DNA of 64,000 bases, from the sequence record MW812341.1. One strand, written 5' to 3'. Shown in pieces: positions 11,085 to 58,094 of the stretch. The position numbers and the translations under genes were made by a program. The notes under the pieces are model-generated. The model was not told the origin of the DNA, searched no databases, and was given only the letters and a program-made list of their open reading frames with translations. Each line of letters opens with the position of its first letter. The stretch's first letter is position 1.

Positions 11085-12607
11085 ACCTCTTCCTCCTGCA
11101 AGATACGCTTATTCGCGTAGTAGCCACACCACAGGCCGTGATGCTGCTCACCGATGTAAACTACTGCATATTCGACACAACGCTCCTGTGTGCGTCGTGT
11201 AGCGACGTAGTAGCGTCCCTTAGGCTCTTTGATACGGTTCAGTTCCGTACGGCCAGGAATGTCGGTACCACGCGTCAGAATTACCGGGATAGTCTTCTCG
11301 GTATGTGCGTAGCCCACCTTCACACTGAACGAACGGTCAACGGTACGGTAGAAGTCTTTACGGGGCTTACCGTTCTCGTCAAACAGCAAATCGGTAATGT
11401 CGTTCAACACCACATCACGCTGACCTTCGATAGAATCACGTAACCAACCTGCCAACTCATCGCGAATCTCCAACGCACGATACGACAGCAACGCTGGTCG
11501 TAACAGACGGGTGATTAACAAATCGTCGAACATGCAAACGTTACGGTCGTCACTCAACGGCATGTGACTTAACGGCAACCCATCCTTCGCCGCTTCAACA
11601 AACTTCTTACGTTTAATGAAGTCGTTGTACACGATGGCCATTGGATCAAAACGCTGGAGACGAGGAACACCTTCCCAAGCACGGTCACAGTGCGTGTTCA
11701 CCAAAGTGTAGACATTATCCCAGCCGTCTTTGTTAAAGAAGACCGCAAACTGTGCGTCGGGAATCATCTTACCAATGAAGACCACGTCGTCCTTGTTCTT
11801 TGCGTGGTTACCGCCGAACATATACTTCCAGGACTCACCGTTAACTGTCACTTCCGGATGTGGCTCGTTTACCATCGGGTAACAGAACTTCACCGTGGAG
11901 GTCAGGAGTGGGAAATCGGTAATCCCTGCTGCCAATGATTCTTCTGGCCCCTCAAGGGTCAGTTCCTCAGGCAACTCTTCGGTTGACCAGTAAGGACGGT
12001 ACTCAATCCCTTTACCTGCTGCAACCATTGCTGATGCTTTACCTGCCATCTGGTCGGCACGCTCGTTACCGTAATGTCCTGCATGGCCTTTAATCTTGAC
12101 CACACGAACGCTACGACCTTCGGTGTGCATACGGTCTTTGATTTCACTAATCTTGATAATCAAATCCCGGTTGCCAATTGGACTACCGTCAGCCTTCGTC
12201 CAACTCTTTTTCTTCCAGTTGTCAATCCACAGGTTCCAGGCATTTACCAGATAAGACGCATCGACGTAGACGATATAGTTCTTAGCACGGAATGGCGCGG
12301 ATTCAAACAGCGTGATAAACGCAGTCAGCTCAGCCACGTCAGACCAGAAGTGTGCAGGTACCGGAATAAAGGCATCCACGAACTCTACCGAGTCAGGAAC
12401 ATCCGGAACTTTCACATCCTGCGGAAACTTCTTGTAGCCAACCGTCGTGACGTGCTCTGTGGCACCGTTGTAACGGTAGGCCATGTTGTCGTCGATTACA
12501 CCGTGATTAAATAGATAGCCGTGAATCCCCGCGCCGGTACCGGGCGGGGTGTTCAGGTGACTACCATCGGTGTAGATGATTGCAACATCTACATCTTTGA
12601 TGTCCAT
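11081..12607 (-). CDS. rnhA: Ribonuclease HI with long C-terminal extension
   Basis: IIYTDGS, VAELTAF, VDASYL..W..NW, KIKGHAGHYGNERADQMA: the RNase HI catalytic D/E/D/H/D pattern. Confidence 0.9.
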   Translation of the reverse strand: MDIKDVDVAIIYTDGSHLNTPPGTGAGIHGYLFNHGVIDDNMAYRYNGATEHVTTVGYKKFPQDVKVPDVPDSVEFVDAFIPVPAHFWSDVAELTAFITLFESAPFRAKNYIVYVDASYLVNAWNLWIDNWKKKSWTKADGSPIGNRDLIIKISEIKDRMHTEGRSVRVVKIKGHAGHYGNERADQMAGKASAMVAAGKGIEYRPYWSTEELPEELTLEGPEESLAAGITDFPLLTSTVKFCYPMVNEPHPEVTVNGESWKYMFGGNHAKNKDDVVFIGKMIPDAQFAVFFNKDGWDNVYTLVNTHCDRAWEGVPRLQRFDPMAIVYNDFIKRKKFVEAAKDGLPLSHMPLSDDRNVCMFDDLLITRLLRPALLSYRALEIRDELAGWLRDSIEGQRDVVLNDITDLLFDENGKPRKDFYRTVDRSFSVKVGYAHTEKTIPVILTRGTDIPGRTELNRIKEPKGRYYVATRRTQERCVEYAVVYIGEQHHGLWCGYYANKRILQEEEV

Positions 12608-43670: not shown

Positions 43671-43705
43671 TACCGCCCTTTCGGGGGCGGTATCCGTTTT
43701 TATTT
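43671..43705 (+). terminator. Intrinsic terminator
   Basis: TACCGCCCT-TTCG-GGGGCGGTA plus T-run. Confidence 0.7.
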
Positions 43706-43715
43706 AAAAGCAGGA

Positions 43716-46700
43716 GTGTTATTCATGTCGACGACAGCCCCAGCCCCGTTCAGTGGGACGCTAAAGCTAGAGACGTACCCAAACCGGTTTAATACGGTTG
43801 TGCCGCCCGAGGGGCCGTTCTACCGCACTGGTTTAAAGCTGACTAGCACTGGCACTAACCCACGTCCGCTGACGGAGGGGTTGGATTACTACCTTTGCTA
43901 TTACTTCAAAGAAGCAGCGGAAGCCCTGAAAGACCAGGTCTTCGGCGGCATCATGCTGATTACCGAAACCTCGTGTAATTACACCATCTATTCCGTCGGT
44001 CGCGAATATCGCGTACCGCAGTCCGAAATCGGGAAGTTCCTGGTTAAGCCGGACATGAAAGACCCACGTAACGTCGACTGGTCTGAACTGATGCGCTATG
44101 CGCCGGTTGTGGCTCCTATTGACCCACCGACCAGCTTAGAAGAAGCTATCCTTCGCGACGACGTGGTAAAGGCACTGGACGATATCCGTAAAGGGATTCT
44201 CGAGCGTGCTGGTGAGTTGGATGAAGCGTACACCGAAGTCACCGAACTTATCTTTGCCAACGGCAAGAAAATCTTCGACGACAACATGTACCAGCATCAC
44301 ATGGTGAAAAACGCCCACCAATACACAGCAGAAGAAATCGGTGCCTTAAAGGTATTGACCAAAGCTGTGGATGCAACGAAGGCATTCGGTAAGACCATTG
44401 ATGAACTGGTCGACCTGATGAAACGTAACGGTATCCAACAAACGCACATCGATACGCTGATGCCTGTGGTGCTGGGTGAACTGCGTGGCCGCTTGAAGGT
44501 TCTGAGCAATGGCGCACTGACGTTCCGTACATCAGACTCCAGCCACGTCATTACGTTGCAGGGTGACAAGTTCCTTATCACCACCACCAAGCCGATTACC
44601 ATTACGGCAGATGCGGATAAGAACGAGCCGGGCATTGGGGTAGAGGTTACGTCTGGCCTGAACGCCATGTATGCTCTGTCCGGCGCGAAAGCTCCAATCT
44701 TCAACGGCGCATACCTGATTACCCCGGACATGGTTTCCTTATATCTGTCTGCGGTAAAACTGTTGCCTGCCAATGCCTACTTCAGCTCCACGGACAGCGT
44801 GAAGATTTACGGTAGTGCGAAAGACTATTCCCCGGTTAACATGACGGGTGTGGTTCCAACGGCAACTACCGCAGTCCCAGGCTTGTTACTGGTGACCTCG
44901 GTTTCGGCAAACATCTCAGCAGGCGCAGCCATTTCACAGGCAGCCGTCTCTGCGTTGAAAACCACGCTGGATAACTACGTGGACTCCACGTACAAAGTCA
45001 ACAACAAAGGCTTTGTCACTAACCCGACAACCGGGAACCAAGAGCTGACCCTGTTAGCCTCTGACCTGAGTCTGGGTAATGTGGAAAACACCGCCCCGAA
45101 CGAAAAACCAGTAACCACTGCGATTCGTGCGGTGTTGAACACCAAAGCTCTGAGCACCCACACGCACACCTTTGCTGACTTGACAGGCGTACCTACTGCG
45201 TCTGACACTGTCGCAGGTCTGGTGCAACTGTGGGACGCTATTGATGCTACTACTGATAAGGTGGTGACATCGAAGCAGGGCTACAATGTTCAGCAGAAAA
45301 TTAATACGGTGAAAGCCACGGTTAATAAGTTGCTGCCGTCTTGGACGACTGCGGGTTCTCAGTTCGGTAACCCAGGCTTCTTGCCGATTCCAACTGTGGG
45401 TAACTTCGCAGGCTACCAGAAGAATCTTGAAGGTAATGGTCGTTTAGGTGTCGTGCGGAAAGAGGCGGGGACGTTGTATGTGTTACGTAACGCCACTGAT
45501 GGTATTCCGAACACAGACAACATCTATTACGCTTATGCGGAGATGCCTGACTCTGGGGCGTTGAACAATCGTCAACAAACCTCCGTAACCTATAAGCCAG
45601 TTGGTCTAGCGACGCTGGCACCGGGTGTACGCCTCGTGAAGATTATCTTACCAGGCGACGACGGGATGATTGCTTACGGTTCCGACGGTAAGTATTATCT
45701 GGTGCTGTTCAACGGTACGCTGAACCACGCTAAGCATACGGCCGTGTATGAGTTCACCCCACCGCAGGAAAACAGCGACGGTGGTACCCGAGCACTGACT
45801 ATCGACGCATTAACCATGCAACTGGTTGTGTATAAAGATAAGGTATACCTTATCAAAGCACTGCTTGATAACACACGTTACTGCGTAGGTGTGTGGTCGG
45901 GTAAACCGGGTGAGACCTTCACGAACTTCCCACTGACCGGCGGTGTTGGCACCAACGGCGATTACACGCTGTTGAAAGCGACACTTACCAATCGTATCAC
46001 CCAACGTGATGGTACCCACTATTTCACCCAAGCTGGGTGGGATTACTGGACACAGGGTAAGAACGTTCAACATGGCCCGCATGCTAACCGTGCGGGTATC
46101 GTGAAGAACACGCAATTCCGAATGGGTTTCTGCGTGTCGGTCTGGTTAGCGACAGCAGCGGGAAGCACCGGCTTTAAACGTTGGCCAACCTCCTTTACCT
46201 TCGACTTCGAAACCAAAGCAATCGCCATTGATAACCCAGAAATCTTCCCAATGAAGGTGGATGAGACGGGTATCACGTTCGCGACTGGTGTAAACATGAA
46301 TGATTACAACCAGGACGTGAAGTGGGCATACGGTTCGGCTAATAACCGCACCTATGTATCCTTCAGCGGCGATAACTTGATGGTGTTCTGGGATCAACCG
46401 GAAAACACCTCGATGGCAGGCTGTAGCTCCAGTAAGATACCGAATGGATTAGATGTGTTTGACTTCTTGTCAGGCAAATCGAAACCTGGCGCTTCGCAGG
46501 TAGCCGCCTGGGCCTTTAACCAAGGTCGTGGCTCCGTCTACGAGATGTCCATGAGTTCACCGGTGTTCGTGGGTTCAAACAGCTACCTGATGAGTCCGGT
46601 ACAGGCCAATAAAGCCATCTTGGTTGAGTGTGACCCTAACACGAAATATGATTCGGCTTATGGCGGCTTCGGGCCGACGAACAACCGTACGGACTTTGAT

Positions 46701-48752
46701 TGGAACACTTATCTCAAGTTGACCACCATGCCGTATGTGTGTACCGCTGCGGTTAATGATGGTACCTTAAACGGTTGCTATTGGGATGACGCGGGTAGCC
46801 AGAACTATCAGGCTATCGGTTCCACCCCAACGTCCGACACGCTGAACATCTCTTCGACCGAATGGAACAAGTTGATTGGCATCGTGAAATCGGCTCCGGG
46901 TTCTGGTGCTGCAAACGGTTATGCGTTCGAACGTATCAATGCCGCAGACAAGCTGCTAATCTCGCTGTTCACGTTCCGTCCTAAAGCCGCTAATGCGGTG
47001 TGGATGGTGCAGGCCGCATGTATGGCTGTGCGTAACGGTAAGACGCTCGTTGACTACTACATGTTCCGTGTAACGCCGTCTGTCTCTGCGACAGGTGATG
47101 TGACCTTCCCGGCCAGCACGGTATCACGTATCTGGTTAGCGAATGACCTGGACTACACCACTGTTAATATCTCCCTTACGGATTTCAGTGGACGTGGTCG
47201 TCGCTTTGGTCAGTCTATCCTTTGCGAAGGCACTGACAAGAAAGGTATCTTGTACATTCCAAACGTACTCTCGGTTAACCAAGTGGGTAACACGGGTGCG
47301 CTGAATCTGGAAATCGTATACGACGCCACTTCTTCGTTCGTGGCAACCGCAGGTCATCTCCGTATGCACCGTACCAATTACGACCCGTCGTATCTGGCAC
47401 CGTTAAAGGACAAGCTGTGCCTCACGAACCTCAGTTCGATTGGACCAGCCTTCTGTGCGGGGAACTCTGCGACGTTGGCGCAGTGGATGACGACTGGGAT
47501 GTATGTGCCTGATGGTTCACCGGTAGAAATCCTCGCTGGGGTGAAAACCGCCGAAGGGTGGAACTTCTACATGACGGAAACAACCAGCTGGCGTATTGGT
47601 GCGAAGTATTATAGTGCCGCACCATACTCCGTTGATTTGAAAGCCGCCTTCCCCGGTAACTATCAGAACCGTATCTTCTACGTGCATGTCGTGCTGGTGA
47701 ATAACGTTCCGCAGTATCAACTGCTGGACGCACGCCAATCAGATACCGACACTCGTCTGTATCTCGGTACGATAACGACTGACAGTTCACGCATCATTGA
47801 TACCCAGCTTGAGAAAGTGAAACGCATGGGTGGCTTGAAACAGATGTTGGAACACGCCGGGACAGAGTACCGTCACGATGTAGACCGACACACTGACCAA
47901 GCGCTGTCGCCGTTAGGGTTGCTCCGTAAAGAGCCACTGATGGTACCTGGTTCAATCCCGGCTTATCTCGATGCACGTTACAGCAACTCGGTGATTTCAC
48001 CGCAGAAGCGTTCTGAACGTCGTGCAACCATTATCAAAACACCTCGTGTGTTTGCTGATGGTGAGATTGGTGACCCGGTCGCGGACTTCTTCCCATCAGC
48101 AAAAGCCGTAGCAGCACAATCGTCTGAGAACAGTGACGCCGCAACCGCAGGCATTCTGTGGGTAGGTGCTGACCTCCCTGACCTCGGCGGTAGTTTCAAC
48201 TGGTCGGTTCGTCCACAGGTTACACCAACCAAGTCTAAGATTCGCATTCGTGTGTATATTCCTGCGAACATTGCAGGGACATCCACCAACGTGGGTATTA
48301 ATGGGCAGTGGACGCCGGTGCCACATGGCTCGAGTGTGACTATTGACCTGACAGTGTCACCGGGGACAAAACTCCTCGTGCGTATTGCAGGCTCAGTAAC
48401 CAGTCAGAACTGGCGTGTTTGGGGTTCGAAATGGATGGGCTTTAGCATCAGTGATTTTGATGAAGCCTCAGGTACAGAGACGCAGTTAACCACCTCTGGT
48501 GTGAGCACCCCGCTTATCTACAATGCGGTGAACCACAACCTGCCAAATATCGTCCTGCGTGCAGAAACGATTGATTTAGGAGTGAACACAAACAACTACT
48601 GGCCGGTCATTAGTGCTGGTAACTGCTCATGTTCACCACCGGTTATCGTGACTGATAATGCAACCACCATCAAGGTGGCGACCACCTGGGTCAGCCTATC
48701 CGGTCTAGAAACAGCGACTGACATCGCCGTTAATCTTATGCCGAGGTTATAA
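43716..48752 (+). CDS. Tail fibre protein 3 (1678 aa)
   Basis: VPPEGPFY module; LSLGNVENTAPNEKPV, HTHTFADL, ASDTVAGLVQL. Confidence 0.8.
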   Translation: MLFMSTTAPAPFSGTLKLETYPNRFNTVVPPEGPFYRTGLKLTSTGTNPRPLTEGLDYYLCYYFKEAAEALKDQVFGGIMLITETSCNYTIYSVGREYRVPQSEIGKFLVKPDMKDPRNVDWSELMRYAPVVAPIDPPTSLEEAILRDDVVKALDDIRKGILERAGELDEAYTEVTELIFANGKKIFDDNMYQHHMVKNAHQYTAEEIGALKVLTKAVDATKAFGKTIDELVDLMKRNGIQQTHIDTLMPVVLGELRGRLKVLSNGALTFRTSDSSHVITLQGDKFLITTTKPITITADADKNEPGIGVEVTSGLNAMYALSGAKAPIFNGAYLITPDMVSLYLSAVKLLPANAYFSSTDSVKIYGSAKDYSPVNMTGVVPTATTAVPGLLLVTSVSANISAGAAISQAAVSALKTTLDNYVDSTYKVNNKGFVTNPTTGNQELTLLASDLSLGNVENTAPNEKPVTTAIRAVLNTKALSTHTHTFADLTGVPTASDTVAGLVQLWDAIDATTDKVVTSKQGYNVQQKINTVKATVNKLLPSWTTAGSQFGNPGFLPIPTVGNFAGYQKNLEGNGRLGVVRKEAGTLYVLRNATDGIPNTDNIYYAYAEMPDSGALNNRQQTSVTYKPVGLATLAPGVRLVKIILPGDDGMIAYGSDGKYYLVLFNGTLNHAKHTAVYEFTPPQENSDGGTRALTIDALTMQLVVYKDKVYLIKALLDNTRYCVGVWSGKPGETFTNFPLTGGVGTNGDYTLLKATLTNRITQRDGTHYFTQAGWDYWTQGKNVQHGPHANRAGIVKNTQFRMGFCVSVWLATAAGSTGFKRWPTSFTFDFETKAIAIDNPEIFPMKVDETGITFATGVNMNDYNQDVKWAYGSANNRTYVSFSGDNLMVFWDQPENTSMAGCSSSKIPNGLDVFDFLSGKSKPGASQVAAWAFNQGRGSVYEMSMSSPVFVGSNSYLMSPVQANKAILVECDPNTKYDSAYGGFGPTNNRTDFDWNTYLKLTTMPYVCTAAVNDGTLNGCYWDDAGSQNYQAIGSTPTSDTLNISSTEWNKLIGIVKSAPGSGAANGYAFERINAADKLLISLFTFRPKAANAVWMVQAACMAVRNGKTLVDYYMFRVTPSVSATGDVTFPASTVSRIWLANDLDYTTVNISLTDFSGRGRRFGQSILCEGTDKKGILYIPNVLSVNQVGNTGALNLEIVYDATSSFVATAGHLRMHRTNYDPSYLAPLKDKLCLTNLSSIGPAFCAGNSATLAQWMTTGMYVPDGSPVEILAGVKTAEGWNFYMTETTSWRIGAKYYSAAPYSVDLKAAFPGNYQNRIFYVHVVLVNNVPQYQLLDARQSDTDTRLYLGTITTDSSRIIDTQLEKVKRMGGLKQMLEHAGTEYRHDVDRHTDQALSPLGLLRKEPLMVPGSIPAYLDARYSNSVISPQKRSERRATIIKTPRVFADGEIGDPVADFFPSAKAVAAQSSENSDAATAGILWVGADLPDLGGSFNWSVRPQVTPTKSKIRIRVYIPANIAGTSTNVGINGQWTPVPHGSSVTIDLTVSPGTKLLVRIAGSVTSQNWRVWGSKWMGFSISDFDEASGTETQLTTSGVSTPLIYNAVNHNLPNIVLRAETIDLGVNTNNYWPVISAGNCSCSPPVIVTDNATTIKVATTWVSLSGLETATDIAVNLMPRL

Positions 48753-48785: not shown

Positions 48786-49991
48786 TTGGCCATGCCAGAT
48801 ATTTTACTTCAGTATCCACTCGACCTCACGGGGAAGATGACGTCTAACGCCGTCAGTATTCCTATCGTACTGGGTGGTGGGAAAGTTAACCGTGCGTTCG
48901 CTTTCCCGGCGGGGCCGTTCTACGCAGATACGTTTAAGCTGCGACCAGCGAACTCGCCAAACACGACGTATAAGCGCGGTGTCGATTACGAGCTTATCTA
49001 TATCCATCCCGTTTACCAGAAGCTTGCCGGTAACAAAGAAATCTGTATGGCTGTCGTTGTTACAAACAGCGCCATCCCGACCGATGTTGTTGCCAGTGCG
49101 CAAGTCACAGGTGGTCCGCAGTCAGCGAACATTGCTGCGATTAAACAGGCGCTGATTGACGCGAACCTGGATGACCGTGTGGTAAACTTCAAAGACCTGC
49201 GTAATGTACCGGATACCTTTGCGGCTGCTCCGTCCTTTAAAGACATCGGCGACATCTTTGGTTTTGAATACATCATTACCGAACTGGCAGGTATCCGCGA
49301 TAGCATTAACTCGGGTAACACCGTTCAGTTAGAACAACTGAAAGTGTTGATTGAGAATATGCAGACGCAGTTTATGGCTGCACTGAATAATCACATCAAT
49401 GCCCAGGGTAACGTTCACAGCCTGGATATCCATCAGGCAAACGGTTTAACTGAAACGGAAATCCGTGCACTGATTCAAGGTGTGCAAACAGCAATCAATG
49501 CTGTCCTGGCCGACATCGGGGATTTGAAAGCGGCAGATACGGCAATCAACCAACGCATTGATGCGGTAGTGGCGGCATTGGGTTCCTGGAACGATCAGCT
49601 GAACTCAGTAGCGCAGAACTATCAACGCATGGCGTTGCAGATGGCGAATCTGAACGACCTGGTCGCGCAACTCCAGAAGATGGTCAATGACCAGAATCAG
49701 GTGATTGCAGGGTTGAATCAACGTATCACTGACCTGGAAAATTCGGGGCAAGATACGCAGCAACAGATTCAACAGCTCCAGCAGGACTTGACGGCACTGC
49801 GTCAACAGGTCGCCAACAACACCTCTGCTATTTCGACGGTGTCTCAGAACCTGAATACGCACGTCAATGCCGACAACCCGCACCCGAAATATCTCCACAA
49901 GCAGTACGGCGGCGTGGTTCAAGCTGCGGTACACGTCAACTCGAGCCTTACTTCTCGAGACGACGTACAGGCGGAAGCAGGTACCAAATAA
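48786..49991 (+). CDS. Short fibre/baseplate adaptor with Asn/Gln-rich coiled coil
   Basis: FPAGPFY module; long heptad region; HVNADNPHPKYL. Confidence 0.75.
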   Translation: MAMPDILLQYPLDLTGKMTSNAVSIPIVLGGGKVNRAFAFPAGPFYADTFKLRPANSPNTTYKRGVDYELIYIHPVYQKLAGNKEICMAVVVTNSAIPTDVVASAQVTGGPQSANIAAIKQALIDANLDDRVVNFKDLRNVPDTFAAAPSFKDIGDIFGFEYIITELAGIRDSINSGNTVQLEQLKVLIENMQTQFMAALNNHINAQGNVHSLDIHQANGLTETEIRALIQGVQTAINAVLADIGDLKAADTAINQRIDAVVAALGSWNDQLNSVAQNYQRMALQMANLNDLVAQLQKMVNDQNQVIAGLNQRITDLENSGQDTQQQIQQLQQDLTALRQQVANNTSAISTVSQNLNTHVNADNPHPKYLHKQYGGVVQAAVHVNSSLTSRDDVQAEAGTK

Positions 49992-50053
49992 GTCTCTTTA
50001 CGCGAGGACCTGTCTATATGGCAGTGTCCTCCCTTATTTATTAAAGGAAACGT

Positions 50054-50437
50054 ATGGCAATCTCATTAAAAAACGTACGCGACCGCCTGCAAAGCGTGGA
50101 GAACACTTACGCAACTGGACCTCGGGTTGATCCCCAGGTAGCATCGGGGGCTTTTAACGCAGCGGATCGCTTCGCTGGTTGGACGCCTGCTCAGTTGGAT
50201 TGTGGTGGAACGTGTAGCTGGTCGTGCTCTAATGGTTGTTCCGCATCGTGTACGAGTTGTTCGGGTACTTGTACCTCAACGTGTACTGGTGCATGTACAG
50301 GCGGGTGTTCTACCGGCTGTTCTGGTTGTTCCGGTTGTTCCGGGAGTTGCTCTGGTAGCTGCTCTGGTAAATGTAGCGGCTGTTCTGGTTCCTGTGGTTC
50401 CGGCTGCGGTGGCTGTTCAGGCTGTTCGGGGCCGTAG
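50054..50437 (+). CDS. Cys-rich CXXX-repeat peptide P1 (candidate radical SAM substrate)
   Basis: Leader MAISLKNVRDRL; CGGTCSWSCS core; 21 Cys in CxxxC/CxxC spacing; SD AAGGA. Confidence 0.85.
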   Translation: MAISLKNVRDRLQSVENTYATGPRVDPQVASGAFNAADRFAGWTPAQLDCGGTCSWSCSNGCSASCTSCSGTCTSTCTGACTGGCSTGCSGCSGCSGSCSGSCSGKCSGCSGSCGSGCGGCSGCSGP

Positions 50438-50830
50438 GGGAAAAACATGGCAATCAACCTCAGAGATATTCAAAACCGGCTCAGTGCTATCGATGCTGCT
50501 GCATTGAAAGACAACGCCGGTGTACAAACCTACATCCGCAACAAGGGAACCAACAACTCACAGCGTTTCGGGGGTTTCTCCCGTGAGCACTATGACTGCG
50601 GCGGTACTTGTAGTTGGAGCTGTTCTTCATGCTCCGGTGGGTGTTCTGGCTCGGCATCAGGAACCTGTGGGGCCAGCTGCTCCGCAAGTTGTACGTCAGG
50701 TTGTTCATCGACGTGTACGGGCTGCTCAGGATGTTCGGGCAGTTGCTCTAGCGGTTGTTCTGGTACCTGTACGGGCGGTTGTAGCTCTTCGTGCAGCTCA
50801 AGTTGTTCCGGTTGTTCTGGGTGTTCAGGA
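50200..50830 (+). repeat. Imperfect 9/12-nt tandem repeats (TGT/TGC-TCN-GGN) encoding CSG/CSGS units in P1 and P2
   Basis: For example TGTTCTGGTTGTTCCGGTTGTTCCGGGAGTTGCTCTGGTAGCTGCTCTGGT. Confidence 0.8.
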
Positions 50831-50842
50831 CCACAACGCTAA
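50447..50842 (+). CDS. Cys-rich CXXX-repeat peptide P2
   Basis: Leader MAINLRDIQNRL; HYDCGGTCSWSCS; 20 Cys. Confidence 0.85.
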   Translation: MAINLRDIQNRLSAIDAAALKDNAGVQTYIRNKGTNNSQRFGGFSREHYDCGGTCSWSCSSCSGGCSGSASGTCGASCSASCTSGCSSTCTGCSGCSGSCSSGCSGTCTGGCSSSCSSSCSGCSGCSGPQR

Positions 50843-50867
50843 CGGTATAGCCGACCCCTCACCATAT

Positions 50868-50893
50868 TTTTTACACACTTGGGGGTTACTGTG
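50868..50893 (+). promoter_or_regulatory. Bipartite promoter variant TTTTTACA-N14-TGTG inside the peptide cluster
   Basis: Counted spacing; the TGTG overlaps the P3 start codon. Confidence 0.45.
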
Positions 50894-51097
50894 ATATCAC
50901 TTAAAAGTATCAGAGACAAGCTAGGGCAAGTGGAAGGCTACATCCGTACTGACGATGCGAACGATTACATTCGTAACAGTGGTACGGTAAGCACCACGAA
51001 CAACCTGGCAAGTCTCCCATTATCGCATTACAATTGCGGCGGGTCTTGCAGCTGGACGTGCAGCGGTGGCTGTAGTCACGGAGCAGGAAACCGTTAA
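50891..51097 (+). CDS. Short Cys peptide P3 (68 aa, 4 Cys)
   Basis: GTG start gives MISLKSIRDKL, matching the P1/P2 leader; HYNCGGSCSWTCSGGCS. Confidence 0.75.
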   Translation: MISLKSIRDKLGQVEGYIRTDDANDYIRNSGTVSTTNNLASLPLSHYNCGGSCSWTCSGGCSHGAGNR

Positions 51098-51109
51098 GGG
51101 GAGTTTTAA

Positions 51110-51997
51110 ATGAAGAACGATATGCACCTTGCGTTTCGCACAACGCAAAACTTTCCGTTACAAATCAGCATCTATGACAGCGTGAAGTATCATCTAACGG
51201 GCGAAATCCTGTTGATTACTCAGCTGCCAGCTGAATGGCCGAAGGTTCGCGGACGTGAGTTAATCAATCCGAAAAACTTCGAAGTGCTGAATGATTACAT
51301 GTTGGCTGGGCACAAGGTTGAGCATATCTACCTGAATACCGGTGAGCAGGAAATCAACGGCAAGTTCATCGACCGCAAATACTTCTTCAGCGACGGTGTG
51401 CTGAACCAGTGCGGTGATTTAGAAATGCTGTTGACGCCGTTTGCAGAAACGGGCCTCAAGCCAATGGTGCGCCGTGAGTGGAGCTGGGACTACCCGAGTT
51501 CTCTGCCATTCTGGTATTCGCAAGTGCCTGCGGAAACCGAGCACTACGAAGGGGTAGAAATCTATTACCCAATCGAAGGCTACGAAAGCCTCGGCATCCA
51601 CAAGATGCTCGACCTCTTAGCATTCAGCTATAAGTTTAAATGGCTGCACAGCGAGAAGAAATTTGTTGCCATCACTGACGAACACGAAATCACCAAGCGT
51701 ATCCGCAAACCGTGGATGCAGTATCTGGTGCAGTGGAAGTACGGTGAAGCGCCGGGAACCGAAGCAGACTTAACGAAGCTGGTGAGCTTCTTAATGCAGA
51801 AGGTTGACCTGAGCGTTGAAGAGCAAGTGGCCGCTAGTGCAATCCTCGAACGTAAGGTTACTCTCGATGACCTGGAACGCATTAACGAGCGTCATGAAGT
51901 GCTGAACAAGATTCTTGCTGCTTACCATGACCCCTTCGTATTGAAGCAGGGTGTGGACATCAAAGAAGACCCACTGTTCGCACTGACATTCGAATAA
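51110..51997 (+). CDS. Accessory protein of the peptide/radical SAM cluster (295 aa)
   Basis: SD GGGGAG; no motif recognised. Confidence 0.75.
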   Translation: MKNDMHLAFRTTQNFPLQISIYDSVKYHLTGEILLITQLPAEWPKVRGRELINPKNFEVLNDYMLAGHKVEHIYLNTGEQEINGKFIDRKYFFSDGVLNQCGDLEMLLTPFAETGLKPMVRREWSWDYPSSLPFWYSQVPAETEHYEGVEIYYPIEGYESLGIHKMLDLLAFSYKFKWLHSEKKFVAITDEHEITKRIRKPWMQYLVQWKYGEAPGTEADLTKLVSFLMQKVDLSVEEQVAASAILERKVTLDDLERINERHEVLNKILAAYHDPFVLKQGVDIKEDPLFALTFE

Positions 51998-52018
51998 AAA
52001 TACTGGAGTAAACCTGCA

Positions 52019-52924
52019 ATGAGTGAAGAAGCTGTGTCGGCCATTCGTCGCGACCCGACAGACACTCCCATGGAACTGTCTATCGTTACCACCTCGAAGT
52101 GCAACTTAGATTGTAGCTTCTGTGGTGGTGCGGGGTATATGGATGTCAAGGACGTTGCGCGCGACATCCAGAAAGATAAACTGTTCGAGGTGCTAGAGCA
52201 GCACCCAACGATCCGCCAGATTAACTGGACAGGCGGAGAGCCTTTACTGGCTTTCAAGAAAATCCAGGAGTTCATGGCAGAACTGAAAGAACGTTACCCG
52301 CACCTGCAACACGAGATGTACACTAACGCGTTGCGTCTGAGCCCTGAGCAGCTTCCGCTACTCTCCCAGCTTGACCGTATCTTCGTCTCGTTTGACGGAT
52401 ACGAAAAATCAGAACGTCCTTTACTGCGCATTGCAGAAGAAGGTCGCTTTGAGGTGTTTGATACCCTGCACGCTCTCAACAATGTGAGCCTGTGGTCGGT
52501 AGTAACCCGTGCTCAGCTGGGTGATAAGCGCTGGCAGGATGATTTACTGGAACTCCACCGTGCAACGTATCACTACGGGTTCCAGGGTTTCCGTCTGATG
52601 TTTGATAACTACATGCCTAAGCCGTTGTCGCCTGACCATGTGATGAACTTCATGTACGGCTACAACAAAATGCATGAGCAGCTGACCTATCTGAATCGTA
52701 TCAACGATTCACACATTCCACTGAGCATCAATAAGTTCTTCGCTCAGCATTGTGATGATTGTAGCAGCTTGATGTGGGTCAAGTCAGATTCGACGTTTGA
52801 GCAAAACCAAAACGCCGTTGATGTCATTGATTCTGGGTGTAATCGTCTGGCCGAAGTGATTGGCTTTGATGCGTACAAGTACATCAATCGAACTATTCAG
52901 GCGGGACTAAATAATGCGCGATAG
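52019..52924 (+). CDS. Radical SAM enzyme 1 (short C-terminal Cys domain)
   Basis: CNLDCSFC (CxxxCxxC), WTGGEPLL, VSFDG, C-terminal CDDC...GC. Confidence 0.9.
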   Translation: MSEEAVSAIRRDPTDTPMELSIVTTSKCNLDCSFCGGAGYMDVKDVARDIQKDKLFEVLEQHPTIRQINWTGGEPLLAFKKIQEFMAELKERYPHLQHEMYTNALRLSPEQLPLLSQLDRIFVSFDGYEKSERPLLRIAEEGRFEVFDTLHALNNVSLWSVVTRAQLGDKRWQDDLLELHRATYHYGFQGFRLMFDNYMPKPLSPDHVMNFMYGYNKMHEQLTYLNRINDSHIPLSINKFFAQHCDDCSSLMWVKSDSTFEQNQNAVDVIDSGCNRLAEVIGFDAYKYINRTIQAGLNNAR

Positions 52925-54254
52925 TTTCATTCCGGCCTCAGAGCCGAAAATCACAAAGACCTATCAGGTCGTGACCAACCTGTCGTGCAACCTCGACTGT
53001 GAGTATTGCTACGAACGTAAGTATCCGCGTAACAACAAAGTCGTGGATGCGGTAGACTTCATCCATGCGTGCTTCGACCGTGACCGTCATCTTCCAAATG
53101 TGGAAGTGATTATCGACATCATCGGCGGTGAGCCAATGATGCAGCCGAAGATTCTGCTGGGTGTGTTTGAAGCCGCTGAAGAACTGGCCGCTCGTGATGG
53201 GCGTGATGTTATCTTCTCTATCTCCACGAACGGTACGCTGTTTGACAAACCGTTGAACCGTGAAATCATCGAGCGTTGGAAAGACAGACTGTCTATCGGC
53301 GTATCCATCGATGGTCTGCCGGAAGTGCACGATAAGTACCGTATCTTCACCACCACGCGTGAAGGTTCGTACGAGAAGGCCATGAAGGGCTATAACTACC
53401 TCAAGTCCGTGGGTATCCTCGAGCTGGGTGTGAAGGCAACCTTTACTTCTGATACGCTGCCGAAATACGGCGCGTCAATGAAGCACCTGATTGACGTTAC
53501 TGGTGGTGGTACACTGTCCGGTAACGTAACGTACGAAGACGTACTGCCGCGTAGCTCCGCTCTGGAAATCGCTAACCAGATGATGGACGTTATCGACTAC
53601 TGGTTTGAGAAGGGCTTGCAGAAAGACCCGCGTAACCGTCTGACCCACATCTTCCCAGATGGTCTGGACTTCATGGCAACATGGGACCCAGATTGGCGTC
53701 AGAAACTGCTGGATGATGAAGCAACACGTCTTGACCCTGAGCGTGTGCGTCCATTCTGTGGTACCGTAACGCACATGACCTGCCTGGGCTTTGACCGTAA
53801 GATTTACGGTTGTAACCGCTTCATGTCAACTGTTACCACACGCCAGGCTATTGGCGAGTTAGTGGGACGTGAGATTGTGAACACCGACGGCGGTAAGCTG
53901 TTAGGTGAAATCAATAAGCAGTACACCAACTACCCAGAAACTTGCCTGGGTTGTCCGATGAAGCACGCCTGTGGTAGCTGTGCTGCTGCTGCGTACGAAA
54001 ACGGTGATGGTGAACTGGAAGCACGTCGTGAATACCATGGCGAACGTCGCCAGTGTGGTTGGACGACGGCTAAGCTGCTTGTAGCCGAATACTTCTATCA
54101 GAAGACCGGTACAATCCGCTACACCGACCTGAACGATAAAACCCAGTGCTACTGCGTATCTTGTGTACGTGCTCGCTCTGAGGCAGAAAAGAAAACTCAA
54201 TTAGGAGCACCTGCGAATGAAGTCCCTGCTAATACACAATTTTACGAAGCGTAG
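52914..54254 (+). CDS. Radical SAM/SPASM peptide maturase
   Basis: CNLDCEYC, IGGEPM, STNGT, SIDG..HDKYR; SPASM-like CG..C..GCNRF..CLGCPMKHACGSC..C; extra CYCVSC. Confidence 0.92.
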   Translation: MRDSFIPASEPKITKTYQVVTNLSCNLDCEYCYERKYPRNNKVVDAVDFIHACFDRDRHLPNVEVIIDIIGGEPMMQPKILLGVFEAAEELAARDGRDVIFSISTNGTLFDKPLNREIIERWKDRLSIGVSIDGLPEVHDKYRIFTTTREGSYEKAMKGYNYLKSVGILELGVKATFTSDTLPKYGASMKHLIDVTGGGTLSGNVTYEDVLPRSSALEIANQMMDVIDYWFEKGLQKDPRNRLTHIFPDGLDFMATWDPDWRQKLLDDEATRLDPERVRPFCGTVTHMTCLGFDRKIYGCNRFMSTVTTRQAIGELVGREIVNTDGGKLLGEINKQYTNYPETCLGCPMKHACGSCAAAAYENGDGELEARREYHGERRQCGWTTAKLLVAEYFYQKTGTIRYTDLNDKTQCYCVSCVRARSEAEKKTQLGAPANEVPANTQFYEA

Positions 54255-54774
54255 TCTTCACCTGGTAGACTTGTTTCTCCGTAAACATAAGCTGTACAAC
54301 GTTCACGCGATTGTACCGGCTGAAGACTTCTCCAAGGAAGTGGAAGCCCTGTGTGTTCGCTTTGGGCTTAACGTGATTGTTCCGCTGTCCGGTCTGGAAG
54401 GTGGTCATCTCTCGTTGCAGGAAGTGGAGAAGCGTAACCCCGGTATCGAGGAACGCATCAAAACCTTCCCGCGTCACAAAATCGAAATCCTGCGCCGTTC
54501 TACGCGCAATATGGATGCCGAAAACCTGTTGGGTCTCGCCATGAACTGGCCTGAGATCCGCGTGCGTGCTTGTCGTTCCCTGGAGCAGTATGATGCCTTC
54601 GGGGAAGAGATGCATATGGTGTTTGGATTTATGGAACAGAACCAGGACGATGCCAAGCTGCTCAACTTCCACTTCGGTGATGAGTTGGAAACCGATTTCC
54701 AGATGTTTGATTTCGGGCTGGCAATGGAACTGGGGCTGGTAGGAGCGAATGAATGCTTACTAATGACGAAATAA
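54217..54774 (+). CDS. Accessory hypothetical protein (185 aa)
   Basis: Overlaps both neighbours; SD AGGAG. Confidence 0.7.
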   Translation: MKSLLIHNFTKRSLHLVDLFLRKHKLYNVHAIVPAEDFSKEVEALCVRFGLNVIVPLSGLEGGHLSLQEVEKRNPGIEERIKTFPRHKIEILRRSTRNMDAENLLGLAMNWPEIRVRACRSLEQYDAFGEEMHMVFGFMEQNQDDAKLLNFHFGDELETDFQMFDFGLAMELGLVGANECLLMTK

Positions 54775-55409
54775 AACGTCGTTACTTCGAGATGGGTGCG
54801 CCAATTGACCGTCATGGCAATTACCAGGCCATCCACCGTACCGAAGATGCTACCAAGCAGGGGTTCTGTACCCTGCTGCATTACCATCTGTTAAATGGGA
54901 TGACAGACAAGGCAGCGATGGCTGCTTTAAAAGGTTACGACCTGTCTGACGTTGAGGTCAACTTCATCATGAAGAAGACCAAAGACTTTATCGCAGATGT
55001 TCTGGAACTGCCGTTGGATGACATCCGTAAAGGACTGGCATCTACGGTCGGCCACATGTGGCGTGAGTTTAACCGTATCTTGGGTGAGTTGAATACCCGT
55101 TACGAAAACCTGCGTTTCGAAGACATTGTTGTTGGTGACCGTCGTTATCAAGCGACCGAGAAATCGCGTGCTGCCCTGGCTGGTTATATTCAGTCTGCGG
55201 TTGACCCGATGTATTGGATTGATGCGATGAACACCCCAGTGGAGCCGTTTGACATGTCAAACGTGCAAGAACTGTATGCGGCGATTATCCAACGTGATAA
55301 TGACCTGCACATGGCGCTGAATGTGAAGAAACAAAAACTTCGCACACTGGCAGAAAAGAATGACTTCACTGCGGTGATGGCAATGGCCAAGGAAGAAAAC
55401 CTGGCGTAA
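54753..55409 (+). CDS. DUF4376-like / tail fibre assembly-type protein
   Basis: C-terminal RRYQATEKSR..WIDAMN..FDMS..LY.AI..R..LH..KKQKLR pattern. Confidence 0.6.
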   Translation: MLTNDEIKRRYFEMGAPIDRHGNYQAIHRTEDATKQGFCTLLHYHLLNGMTDKAAMAALKGYDLSDVEVNFIMKKTKDFIADVLELPLDDIRKGLASTVGHMWREFNRILGELNTRYENLRFEDIVVGDRRYQATEKSRAALAGYIQSAVDPMYWIDAMNTPVEPFDMSNVQELYAAIIQRDNDLHMALNVKKQKLRTLAEKNDFTAVMAMAKEENLA

Positions 55410-55413
55410 GACG

Positions 55414-55449
55414 GTGTGCCCTTCGGGGCACACTCTCTTTTTATTTTTT
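55414..55449 (+). terminator. Intrinsic terminator closing the fibre/peptide/radical SAM unit
   Basis: GTGTGCCC-TTCG-GGGCACAC plus T-run. Confidence 0.8.
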
Positions 55450-55488: not shown

Positions 55489-56091
55489 ATGGCAATGCCA
55501 GTAGACCGTTGGAGTATGGAAGGCATCATTGCCGCCAAAGTTAATCTGGAAGGTGGTTATGTGAATAACCCCAACGACTTAGGTGGGCCTACCAAGTACG
55601 GGGTAACACAAACGACCGCTCGTGAGAACGGTTACACCGGCGACATGCGTGACCTGACTTACGCACAAGCCATCGCGATTTACAAGAAAGGTTGGTGGGA
55701 CCGTATGCGTCTCGATACCTTTATGGCACTGAACCCGCTGTTGGCTGACCGCATGTTCGACTTCGGTATCAACGCCGGTCGTGCTAACTGTATCAAGTCT
55801 CTGCAACGTATCCTCAATGTGTTGAACCGTCAGGGTAAGCTGTACGCTGACATCGACGCTGATGGTGGTATCGGTACATTGACCATGAATGCAGTACAGG
55901 GTTACGTGAAAGCCCGTGGTGCAGACGGCGTTAACCGTCTGATGTTTGCATTGACTTGCCACCAGGTTTCTTACTACACAGAAATCTCTGAGAAGCGTGC
56001 ACAGAACGAAGAGTTCACCTACGGCTGGTACGACCGTGTGTACCGTGAAATGGGCGACTACGCTATCAAGGTAGGCGTATGCTCTAAATAA
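55489..56091 (+). CDS. Glycoside hydrolase family 108 lysozyme with peptidoglycan-binding domain
   Basis: EGGYVNNPNDLGGPTKYGVT; FDFGINAG; C-terminal F.YGW..R. Confidence 0.92.
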   Translation: MAMPVDRWSMEGIIAAKVNLEGGYVNNPNDLGGPTKYGVTQTTARENGYTGDMRDLTYAQAIAIYKKGWWDRMRLDTFMALNPLLADRMFDFGINAGRANCIKSLQRILNVLNRQGKLYADIDADGGIGTLTMNAVQGYVKARGADGVNRLMFALTCHQVSYYTEISEKRAQNEEFTYGWYDRVYREMGDYAIKVGVCSK

Positions 56092-56108: not shown

Positions 56109-56243
56109 ATGAAAAGACATTTGCCTGAGTTATTCCAGAAGAAATTGAATGCATTTTTTACGGATGATGATCCGCCTCCTGCGGTGTTGTGGTTAAGTGT
56201 CGCCATTCTGGTGGGGTACTTTCTGATTAAGGTGTTCCACTGA
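56109..56243 (+). CDS. 44-aa single-TM protein (holin-like candidate)
   Basis: Manual translation MKRHLPELFQKKLNAFFTDDDPPPAVLWLSVAILVGYFLIKVFH; SD AGGA; TGATG-coupled to the next gene. Confidence 0.55.
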   Translation: MKRHLPELFQKKLNAFFTDDDPPPAVLWLSVAILVGYFLIKVFH

Positions 56244-56953
56244 TGCTTGAATTAAAATACAAAGTGTTGGAGAAGCAGTGGTTTGTCCTCACGGAAGATT
56301 TCCGGGTACCGTTTACGTTACGGTCTCTGTATCGCGGACAAAAGGGTTTGGATGAGATGGTATACCTGACGGGTGTACATCCTGATAAGGAAATGTACGT
56401 GACAGCTCCTGCGGGCTTTGTGACGGACTTGGCGAGTATCCCGCCTGCCTTACAACCACTTCTGCATCCGGATGGCCCATGGGCCGCTGCGGCGTGTATA
56501 CACGACCTGCTGTATCAGAAGACACCTTCACCGGTTCCTTATCCTGATACGCCAGCTGGGAATCTGTCGCGTTCCACGGATAAAGCATTTGCGGATTTGA
56601 TGTTCTTGCGCATTATGGAAATGACAGGCGTCGATAACTTCGTTGCACAGTCTTTCTACGAAGCCGTCCACCGTTTCGGTTGGCCGTCGTATGCAGACAA
56701 GAACGATGACCCGCATCAGTACAGTTATCCATCCCCATCGGGCGTGACACTGAACTACGCCAGGAACTATCTGTTCTTCCGTGAGTACATCGAAAGCGCA
56801 GTACCCGACCATGAACGTTGGGACTTGACCACACATCGCTGTGTGAATATGCGTTACCAGAACATCAAGCGGGCATTTAACGCCTCTGCGGAGTTCTGGG
56901 GCGTTCAGCCTATAAGTGAACCGGTTAATCAGATTCCTTTATTAAAGGTCTGA
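56243..56953 (+). CDS. DUF1353 family protein
   Basis: PAGFVTDLASIP, AACIHDLLY, ADLMF..IM, AVHRFG. Confidence 0.85.
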   Translation: MLELKYKVLEKQWFVLTEDFRVPFTLRSLYRGQKGLDEMVYLTGVHPDKEMYVTAPAGFVTDLASIPPALQPLLHPDGPWAAAACIHDLLYQKTPSPVPYPDTPAGNLSRSTDKAFADLMFLRIMEMTGVDNFVAQSFYEAVHRFGWPSYADKNDDPHQYSYPSPSGVTLNYARNYLFFREYIESAVPDHERWDLTTHRCVNMRYQNIKRAFNASAEFWGVQPISEPVNQIPLLKV

Positions 56954-56971: not shown

Positions 56972-57025
56972 TTAAAATAAAGATACCTACACCCCAAAGG
57001 GTGTAGGTACTCTTTTTATTATTTA
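56972..57025. terminator. Bidirectional intrinsic terminator
   Basis: TACCTACACCC-CAAA-GGGTGTAGGTA with A- and T-rich flanks. Confidence 0.8.
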
Positions 57026-57531
57026 AAGCCGGTTAATTCACCGTTTGCGAACATCAATCCTTGTTTACCAACGTCGGTAACTATAATGACGAATGAACCC
57101 CACCACTTTAATAAGGTATCGTGCATCTTAATCTTCACGTAGAGATTATCCGGCTCTTCTGGCACCGTCCAACGTGAAATAACAACGTCGTCAAGGGTAG
57201 GCCAGTTATTCGGTAGGTTAAGGTTGAACTGTTTCAAGGCATAAGCGTCGTCTTGCCACGGTTCATGAATATCCGTCACTTGCCAGCTGTACGTATCTTC
57301 CCCATTAGGGTGGGTTAAGTTGTAGCGCGTGAAATGATATTCCTTACTACCTTTAAACGTCCCGCTTTCTGATTTCGCTGTTAGCGTCAGAACCGAGTTA
57401 CGCGTACCACCTTCTGCACCCGGAGTATACGGTGCAGGATCGCCAAACACAACATCAGCCAGCGTTAGATTCAAATCGGGATTTGCTTCATTCACTAAAT
57501 CAATGAACTGTTCTTGTAGCGTCTTTGCCAT
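57019..57531 (-). CDS. Small virion-type protein, family C
   Basis: QEQFIDLVNEANP; TRNSVLTLTAK; C-terminus ANGELTGFK. Confidence 0.75.
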   Translation of the reverse strand: MAKTLQEQFIDLVNEANPDLNLTLADVVFGDPAPYTPGAEGGTRNSVLTLTAKSESGTFKGSKEYHFTRYNLTHPNGEDTYSWQVTDIHEPWQDDAYALKQFNLNLPNNWPTLDDVVISRWTVPEEPDNLYVKIKMHDTLLKWWGSFVIIVTDVGKQGLMFANGELTGFK

Positions 57532-57560: not shown

Positions 57561-58094
57561 TCACTTGAACCCAGTCAGCTCGCCGTTAGCGGTAGACAGG
57601 TCAGTCTTCGTTGCAGGTTTTGTAATCTTCCACGTAACGCCATCATCGGTAAACTTGATGTGGTTATTGATAGTGACGTTGACATCCAGTGTGTCGTCAG
57701 TATCGTTATCGGTACGGGTGATGACAATTTCATCCAGCAAGAACGCATCGCGGGTGTACTGCATTTGCGTACGTTCGTTCAGGAATGCGAGTACATGCTC
57801 ATCGTCATTCCATTCATCGACCGTCCCGTCGACATACTCTTCACCACCGTACATAAAGCCGGTCGGTACACGGCGGTAGTGAACAGTGATGTTCTCTTTG
57901 AAGTTTGGACTGTCTGGGGAAGCGGTCATGTTGAGGGCGTAGTTTGGAATCGTTTCCAAGCCTTCGGTAGTCTCCGGGGTGTATGGCCCACGGGAACCGA
58001 ACGTAACGTCCTCAGGTGTCAGGGGATGCGGTAAGGAAGGGTTAGCCGCATTATACAAATCACATAGTTGTTGTTGCGCTGTTACGATAGCCAC
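57561..58094 (-). CDS. Small virion-type protein, family C
   Basis: QQQLCDLYNAANP; C-terminus TDLSTANGELTGFK. Confidence 0.75.
   Translation of the reverse strand: MAIVTAQQQLCDLYNAANPSLPHPLTPEDVTFGSRGPYTPETTEGLETIPNYALNMTASPDSPNFKENITVHYRRVPTGFMYGGEEYVDGTVDEWNDDEHVLAFLNERTQMQYTRDAFLLDEIVITRTDNDTDDTLDVNVTINNHIKFTDDGVTWKITKPATKTDLSTANGELTGFK

Follow-up and report, generated by a model that had tools for sequence, protein, structure and literature searches.

Why should a jumbo phage keep two radical S-adenosylmethionine (SAM) enzymes and three small, cysteine-rich proteins in the middle of its tail-fibre genes? The question is raised by a stretch of 64,000 nt (hereafter the window) from the Erwinia jumbo phage pEa_SNUABM_9 (MW812341.1, Machinavirus, 247 kb genome), in which eight plus-strand open reading frames (ORFs) encode the Cys-repeat peptides P1, P2 and P3, a 295-aa accessory protein, the radical SAM enzymes rSAM1 and rSAM2, a 185-aa accessory protein and a DUF4376 protein. 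An earlier interpretation made from the letters and their ORFs (the sequence-only reading) had taken these genes for a system resembling those of RiPPs (peptides made by the ribosome and modified after their translation), used to modify virion appendages rather than to make a secreted bacteriocin. The answer that we favour, with moderate confidence, is the enzyme-installed thioether stapling of fibre-associated Cys-repeat segments, which in this phage have been split off as P1-P3.

The Cys-repeat proteins P1, P2 and P3

P1 (50054-50437, plus strand; 127 aa, 21 Cys), P2 (50447-50842, plus strand; 131 aa, 20 Cys) and P3 (50879-51097, plus strand; 72 aa, 4 Cys) match the same family, phrog_6085, with E values of 3.6e-45, 8.4e-52 and 1.9e-25, respectively. 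Common to the three are an N-terminal segment of about 50 aa, containing 5-7 Lys/Arg, and the block C-G-G-[TS]-C-S-W-[ST]-C-S, which the sequence-only reading had correctly singled out, just as it had placed the eight ORFs where the ORF coordinates put them. In P1 a 49-aa fibre-like N-terminal segment is followed by this junction motif and then by C-x3/x2 repeats (core from 50201); P2 has the same architecture (core from 50597), and P3 consists of the N-terminal segment and the four-Cys junction (from 51035), with no further repeats. Beyond the junction, in which the Trp is invariant, P1 and P2 carry about 17 units of the form C-[ST]-G-x, and the core is composed of 30% Ser, 26% Cys, 25% Gly and 8% Thr. 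Among the 16,952 ORFs of the whole set of loci, 105 contain the junction motif, all of them encoding Cys-repeat or P3-type proteins.

Are these repeats genes at all? When 14 phages from four genera are aligned, the 21 Cys of P1 and the 20 of P2 each occupy a column free of gaps and substitutions, and P1 always has 21 Cys across the syntenic relatives described below. Each of these columns employs both Cys codons, and more than one codon occurs in 40 (P1) and 42 (P2) of the invariant columns (n = 42). Furthermore, synonymous codon differences exceed non-synonymous ones several-fold in the closer pairs. Since every Cys is invariant while the codons vary, P1 and P2 are real genes. The spacing string is also conserved, with 228 x3 and 38-52 x2 spacings for P1 and P2 in the 14 orthologues, and the Cys pattern as a whole is far beyond chance.

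The source record annotates none of the three genes; what it has instead is one ORF on the opposite strand and another, of 40 aa, in the wrong frame. Its entries lying over the Cys-repeat genes are pEa_SNUABM_9 00194 (window 50191-50457, minus strand) and 00195 (window 50614-50751, plus strand). The reference records of ChrisDB, SPN3US and CR5 either lack P1 or have an antisense ORF in its stead, and give some of P2/P3 in the wrong frame or not at all. The ORFs annotated over Cys-repeat genes are there ChrisDB gp188 (L001 12192-12449, minus strand; L numbers are our locus designations), SPN3US gp166 (L002 6573-6908, plus strand) and CR5_157 (L003 6377-6589, minus strand). We rejected the minus-strand ORFs over the peptides, such as the one at 50191-50457, as genes, and regard them as mirror artefacts of the Cys-codon repeats. 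Because search databases are built on such records, virion proteomics is blind to any of P1-P3 that they miss.

When the first 75 residues of P2 were compared by HMMER with 1.84 billion representatives, 11 matches were obtained, one of them a false repeat protein. We therefore rejected the idea of an N-terminal leader family extending beyond the jumbo phages. With this N-terminal segment limited to the clade, it is through the junction and the repeats that the module can be tied to fibre proteins.

The radical SAM enzymes and their association with the repeats

rSAM1 (52019-52924, plus strand) and rSAM2 (52914-54254, plus strand) match the Pfam Radical_SAM family at 1e-13 and 5e-14, and carry the CX3CX2C motif at residues 28-35 (52100-52123) and 25-32 (52986-53009), respectively. 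In rSAM2 the motif Cys (25/29/32) are accompanied by Cys 282, 300, 344, 347, 353, 356 and 381, all conserved across 13 diverse relatives; the motif together with this seven-Cys, SPASM-type C-terminal set is the Cys pattern expected of TIGR04115 members. The designation of rSAM2 as a radical SAM/SPASM enzyme in the sequence-only reading thus stands for the motif and the seven Cys, but not for the last block, CX2CX5CX2C, which is one residue shorter than the canonical SPASM CX2CX5CX3C.

The named families closest to rSAM2 are PapB (2.4e-36) and TIGR04115 (9e-33). Its scores of 114.2 bits against TIGR04115 (cut-off 350), 66 bits against QhpD (TIGR03906, cut-off 453) and 49.7 bits against CrpC (TIGR04463, cut-off 525) place it outside the three families as curated, and rSAM2 belongs to a diverged sister clade of TIGR04115. 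The link to the CXXX-repeat families proposed from the sequence was recovered in part, as weak matches of P2 to TIGR04117/TIGR04114, but not as membership of the enzyme. The best solved relative of the rSAM2 family profile is CteB (5WGG; 3.9e-41, aligned over chain residues 95-431). Since this alignment starts at residue 95, and the motif lies at residue 25 of rSAM2, the N-terminal RiPP recognition element (RRE) is lacking from rSAM2. The best solved relative of rSAM1 is SkfB (3.6e-5), and its C-terminal Cys set is reduced to two or three (245, 248, 274). Some metagenomic SPN3US-like phages have, inserted between P1 and P2, an additional rSAM1 paralogue as their third radical SAM gene (L011 4542-5453 and L017 4543-5454).

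Do such enzymes keep company with Cys repeats elsewhere? Taking the rSAM2 family as a probe, we collected 86 viral or metagenomic loci, whose distant rSAM2 relatives (25-45% identity) belong to quite different phages, and searched within 7 kb for ORFs with at least 6 Cys at x2-x3 spacing. Such an ORF lies near the rSAM2 relative, amid tail-fibre and baseplate genes, in 83 of the 86 loci, and in nearly every locus two or three radical SAM genes adjoin the repeats. Among more distant, mostly generic rSAM/SPASM genes from species genomes, it was found in 12 of 80 loci, a set that tells little about the clade of pEa_SNUABM_9. The linkage between radical SAM genes and peptides on which the sequence-only reading depended is thus kept in other genomes and, together with the homology to thioether-forming maturases, lends strong support to the RiPP-like pairing of enzyme and substrate that it had proposed. 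In a large gut-virome group, the radical SAM genes are full TIGR04115 members (474, 512 and 446 bits in L079, L070 and L095, respectively), and in the phage contigs examined the TIGR04115 'CXXX-repeat' family itself sits among tail-fibre and baseplate genes.

Co-occurrence and enzyme family indicate that the Cys repeats are very probably what the enzymes act on. That the product is a thioether is suggested by analogy with the closest enzymes of known function and with the demonstration made with CrpC/CrpA, and we incline to this conclusion with moderate confidence. Other chemistry (an anSME-like conversion of Cys/Ser to an aldehyde, epimerisation or Trp carbon-carbon links), or another substrate altogether, would also account for a radical SAM enzyme at this place. 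Indeed, anSME is the second-best solved relative of the rSAM2 family profile (7.7e-19), the core is Ser-rich and poor in known thioether acceptors, the junction Trp is invariant and all family scores lie under their cut-offs. However, CteB, PapB and TIGR04115 score much better than anSME, and true TIGR04115 members occupy the same kind of phage locus, which makes this explanation very improbable.

The regular spacing of the Cys, at 26% of the core, could also recall a metal site, and the sequence-only reading had itself raised metal binding, beside redox protection, as an option. The repeats would then be metal- or Fe-S-binding fibre segments, perhaps akin to the needles by which some fibres hold metal, or a cluster or sulfur store for the enzymes, with crosslinks few or absent; HxH repeats occur in one fused fibre (see below), and a metal link has been suspected for CrpA (PMC13692751). 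However, a passive metal site needs no radical SAM gene, and two or three of them are kept beside the repeats; the nearest characterised enzymes form thioethers. Moreover, Fe-S sites would be unstable on an extracellular particle. Altogether, we consider metal binding a quite unlikely function of the repeats.

The tail-fibre context

The substrate comes as three free proteins of 70-130 aa in the jumbo phages, as a C-terminal tail on a protein of 247-568 aa, attached through the same junction, with its Tyr, Cys-Gly, Cys-Ser/Thr-Trp and Cys, as a C-terminal tail without the Trp junction, as a protein of 200-440 aa with up to 86 Cys, or as an unannotated 79-aa peptide with 17 Cys (L026 7017-7256, from a prophage in GCA_964344215.1). 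The carriers of the fused module are, judging from their sequence matches, true tail fibres: that of L028 has collagen repeats and matches a tail-fibre PHROG at 6.5e-52, those of L032, L036 and L037 match tail-fibre families at 1e-32 to 1e-55, and those of L035 and L050 match tail-fibre PHROGs at about 1e-10. Furthermore, phrog_6085, the family of P1-P3, is matched by the C-terminal tails of L034, L035, L036, L050, L024, L030 and L033. One protein of L024, encoded downstream of a central fibre of the lambda-J type, has both HxH repeats and the Cys tail. On either side of the modules lie genes of tail-fibre, tail-collar, baseplate and central-fibre families.

Three side observations were made on these loci. 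The 79-aa peptide of L026 starts 2 bases past the stop of a T7-like tail-fibre gene, which raises the question of a translational link. The largest substrates seen, of about 660 aa with 112-122 Cys, lie beside rSAM/SPASM genes on the Termititenax/Margulisiibacteriota contigs L111, L113 and L114. Just downstream of the radical SAM genes in the siphovirus tail module of L024, a 180-aa Cys-containing protein (11876-12418) matches TSP1_ADAMTS at 4.9e-13; a thrombospondin type-1 domain is unusual for a phage.

The fusions bear directly on the possibility that P1-P3 are classical RiPP precursors, with a leader of about 50 aa and a matured core that, once released at lysis, serves away from the particle as a metal scavenger, a signal or an antimicrobial. 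A host protease would cut the core free, or it would stay uncleaved, and the position in the operon would reflect late timing only. The leader-plus-core layout and the origin of the maturases in RiPP families speak for this explanation; a lytic phage has no need of an exporter, the enzymes are not virion proteins, and bacterial loci with related enzymes encode short free Cys-repeat peptides of 52-88 aa. However, neither the eight ORFs nor the relatives' cassettes gave a match to a peptidase or transporter family, much as the sequence-only reading had noted the lack of an ABC exporter and a leader peptidase here. The N-terminal segment shows the same degree of conservation as the core and corresponds to what lies ahead of the repeats in fused fibres, the fusion of module and fibre is found in several lineages, and the module is constantly among fibre and chaperone genes. 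Moreover, the P3 variant of another jumbo phage has 210 aa, including a 140-aa beta-rich C-terminal domain after the junction; as a domain follows the junction, the N-terminal part of this variant is structural and not a disposable leader. We thus consider it unlikely that the peptides are released RiPPs.

The C-terminal position of the fused forms also recalls a transient folding or trimerisation aid, which would be modified, used and discarded before the particle is mature. Removable fibre chaperone domains are usually C-terminal, and genes for a DUF4376 chaperone and for a DUF1353 protein labelled 'tail assembly chaperone' are nearby. Against such a role, no protease domain is present, the enzymes seem too costly for a throw-away tag and the number of repeats is strictly conserved; we find it decidedly improbable.

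A fibre-bound fate is also what the genes around P1-P3 point to. Upstream lie the 1678-aa tail-fibre/baseplate gene (43716-48752, plus strand) and the 401-aa coiled-coil virion protein gene (48786-49991, plus strand), homologues of SPN3US gp168 and gp167, respectively. The order fibre, 401-aa, P1, P2, P3, 295-aa, rSAM1, rSAM2, 185-aa, DUF4376 is kept in all SPN3US-like genomes examined, including SPN3US, CR5, phiEaH2, Asesino, Caitlin, Huxley, Wellington and metagenomic relatives, and spanning records of Machinavirus, Seoulvirus and Derbicusvirus. The expected co-occurrence with fibre genes across jumbo phages is thus observed, as synteny of a ten-gene block. The SPN3US counterpart of the block is gp161-gp167. 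In the mass spectrometry of SPN3US virions, gp167-gp171 were found in tails, and gp168 in tails but not in tailless particles; gp161-gp166 were not found, with a search database that did not contain P1-P3 (PMC5105663 Table S4). The absence of the enzymes and accessory proteins from SPN3US virions fits what would be expected of assembly factors. Fusions and gene context together suggest, at somewhat better than even chances, that the free P1-P3 of pEa_SNUABM_9 are part of the fibre apparatus.

The limits of the block are marked by hairpins. An intrinsic-terminator-like hairpin at 43671-43692 (plus strand; 9-bp stem, 6 GC pairs, T-run) closes the preceding unit, and a strong one at 55413-55434 (plus strand) ends the block after the DUF4376 gene; together with 56984-57009, these are the only strong terminator-like hairpins of the plus strand. 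As such terminators lie only outside it, the stretch from the 1678-aa fibre gene through the DUF4376 gene forms one block. Within it, rSAM1, rSAM2, the 185-aa gene and the DUF4376 gene overlap successively by 11, 38 and 22 nt, as had been seen from the sequence. The accompanying statement that no terminator separates 'fibre 3' from position 55414 is right as far as the strong terminators are concerned, which flank the block, but overlooks a conserved RNA hairpin with a U-rich tail at 50004-50031 (plus strand), between the 401-aa gene and P1. This attenuator- or terminator-like element (-21 kcal/mol, z = -4.2) recurs at the same position in 10 of 10 relatives checked by single-sequence folds, with differing stem letters (it is present at this site in L002, L003, L005, L006, L008, L010, L012, L014 and L110), and four consecutive loop bases do not vary in the alignment. 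The element resembles an attenuator or a stabiliser of a 3' end, and could, as an attenuator, terminator or processing site, set the ratio of fibre-gene to maturation-gene expression.

The accessory proteins complete the cassette. The 295-aa gene (51110-51997, plus strand; phrog_8030) is a homologue of SPN3US gp165. Its family is present in 49 loci, the cassettes of unrelated phages retain a recognisable form of its helical C-terminal half, and its L024 homologue is matched at 2e-14. The AlphaFold model is confident, with a pLDDT (predicted score of the local distance difference test) of 88, and no PDB or BFVD fold match was obtained with it except its own orthologue; a PDB sequence profile search was empty. 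For want of evidence, we rejected an RRE or protease role for this protein, whose confident model matches no known fold. The 185-aa gene (54217-54774, plus strand; phrog_7988), a homologue of SPN3US gp162, is restricted to the jumbo-phage clade, and its product is modelled as a partial beta/alpha barrel (pLDDT 89.5) whose matches, to TIM barrels, QueE and MoaA, are weak and all fall short of E <= 1e-3. Flavodoxin-like and peptidase roles were dropped in view of the barrel model and these non-significant matches. Finally, the DUF4376 gene (54753-55409, plus strand), a homologue of SPN3US gp161 lying in the fibre module, encodes a protein that matches Pfam PF14301 with 39.4 bits (9e-10; gathering cut-off 25). 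It is a member of a family whose proteins are labelled as tail-fibre chaperones in Alteromonas phages (PMC10579305).

Put together, these data suggest the following scheme for a tail-fibre maturation cassette. P1-P3 would be small fibre-derived proteins, made late, along with the fibre genes; the module that forms the C-terminal end of the fibre in other phages would have become three separate genes in the SPN3US-like jumbo phages. rSAM2, with three Fe-S clusters and its relation to CteB, PapB and TIGR04115, and the SkfB-like rSAM1 would act on P1-P3, turning Cys thiols into thioether links to nearby carbons. In this way a floppy Ser/Gly/Cys tail could be stiffened by covalent staples into a rod that resists oxidation, and this already in the cytoplasm, whose reducing conditions keep disulfides from forming. 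As rSAM2 lacks the RRE domain of its relatives, the orphan-fold 295-aa protein probably presents the substrate to it. The DUF4376 protein would then aid fibre assembly, and the stapled pieces would end on the fibre/baseplate complex. The data show the gene content, the selection on every Cys, the enzyme family, synteny, co-occurrence and the fusion to fibres in relatives; from these we infer that the links are thioethers, how the two enzymes share the work, what the 295-aa protein does and that P1-P3 enter the virion. The preference of the sequence-only reading for appendage modification over a secreted bacteriocin thus gains comparative support from the fibre fusions, the constant position of the cassette in tail-fibre/baseplate modules and the DUF4376 gene; its chemistry and the incorporation of P1-P3 stay conditional.

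Several points weigh against this scheme. We infer both the crosslinks and the presence of P1-P3 in particles. rSAM2 lies under the curated cut-offs of every named family. PapB, QhpD and CrpC employ Asp, Glu, Gln or Asn as acceptors, all of which the core lacks, so that another acceptor carbon, or even another type of reaction, is conceivable. In its model, the 295-aa protein has neither an RRE nor another known fold. That the jumbo-phage peptides are free and begin with a leader-like segment would suit a released product as well, and some bacterial relatives do have the short free peptides mentioned above. Lastly, the hairpin before P1 may uncouple the expression of P1-P3 from that of the fibre genes. 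In its widest form, as radical SAM stapling of fibre/baseplate Cys repeats across SPN3US-like jumbo phages, lambda-like siphoviruses, gut-virome phages and prophages, the proposal is tentative, and we would put it slightly below an even chance.

Directly 3' of the block, here and in the Machinavirus relatives, lies an endolysin gene (55489-56091; GH108 and PG_binding_3); the SPN3US endolysin gene is on the opposite strand, a few kb off. The DUF1353 gene (56243-56953, plus strand), whose 'tail assembly chaperone' label comes from ChrisDB, is downstream of the endolysin gene and is faced by two paralogous DUF7941 genes (57019-57531 and 57561-58094, both minus strand). The hairpin at 56984-57009 is a bidirectional terminator between the DUF1353 gene and this pair.

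Relation to known systems

The pairing of an rSAM/SPASM maturase with a Cys-repeat substrate is known, and it is the biological setting that may be new. Our full-text searches of open-access literature turned up nothing that ties radical SAM or CXXX-repeat systems to tail fibres or virions; phage genome papers merely list 'radical SAM' genes, and phages are unmentioned in the CrpC paper (PMC13692751). If the proposed scheme is true, virion proteins would for the first time be known to receive radical crosslinks from an enzyme, and radical thioether stapling, so far found in peptide natural products and a few cellular proteins, would extend to phage particles. It would also explain a conserved ten-gene block in the well-used genetic model SPN3US (gp161-gp167) and give a biological role to the long-orphan TIGR04115 'CXXX-repeat' family, which is abundant in viromes. 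Thin protease- and oxidation-resistant fibres made in a reducing cytoplasm would then represent a new building principle.

The in silico family TIGR04115/TIGR04114 is alike in that a radical SAM/SPASM enzyme adjoins a product with Cys-x-x-x repeats; the cassette differs by its second radical SAM gene and by the genes for the orphan-fold 295-aa protein, the 185-aa protein and the fibre chaperone. CteB/thermocellin (SCIFF) and PapB/freyrasin provide the best relatives of rSAM2, with three Fe-S clusters and Cys thioethers formed in repeated motifs. However, these enzymes own or use an RRE, act on short leader-dependent peptides and employ Thr or Asp acceptors, whereas rSAM2 is devoid of the RRE region and its presumed substrate has about 20 Cys with Ser, Gly and Thr between them. 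The marks of ranthipeptide and sactipeptide loci, namely an RRE in the maturase or, here, in the 295-aa partner, and a clustered peptidase or transporter, are likewise absent from the cassette.

Closer in the nature of the substrate is CrpC/CrpA of Methanococcus voltae, where an rSAM/SPASM enzyme forms thioethers on a whole Cys-rich protein (PMC13692751, 2026). As in QhpD/QhpC, the thioethers are made in a whole protein that stays a protein and is not a secreted peptide. However, CrpC and QhpD belong to other enzyme families, and their substrates are cellular proteins, QhpC being part of quinohemoprotein amine dehydrogenase, with no virus, fibre or particle involved.

Reinforced virion parts are themselves well known, as in the isopeptide chainmail of HK97-type capsids and the iron-holding HxH needles of long tail fibres. 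The likeness lies in a virion part hardened by covalent or metal crosslinks; these are however obtained autocatalytically or by plain metal coordination, without the dedicated radical enzymes encoded here. Finally, the DUF4376 gene stands downstream of the fibre genes, as do the chaperone genes of the Alteromonas phages (PMC10579305), but the latter directly follow their own fibre gene, whereas in the window five maturation genes and the three peptide genes lie between.

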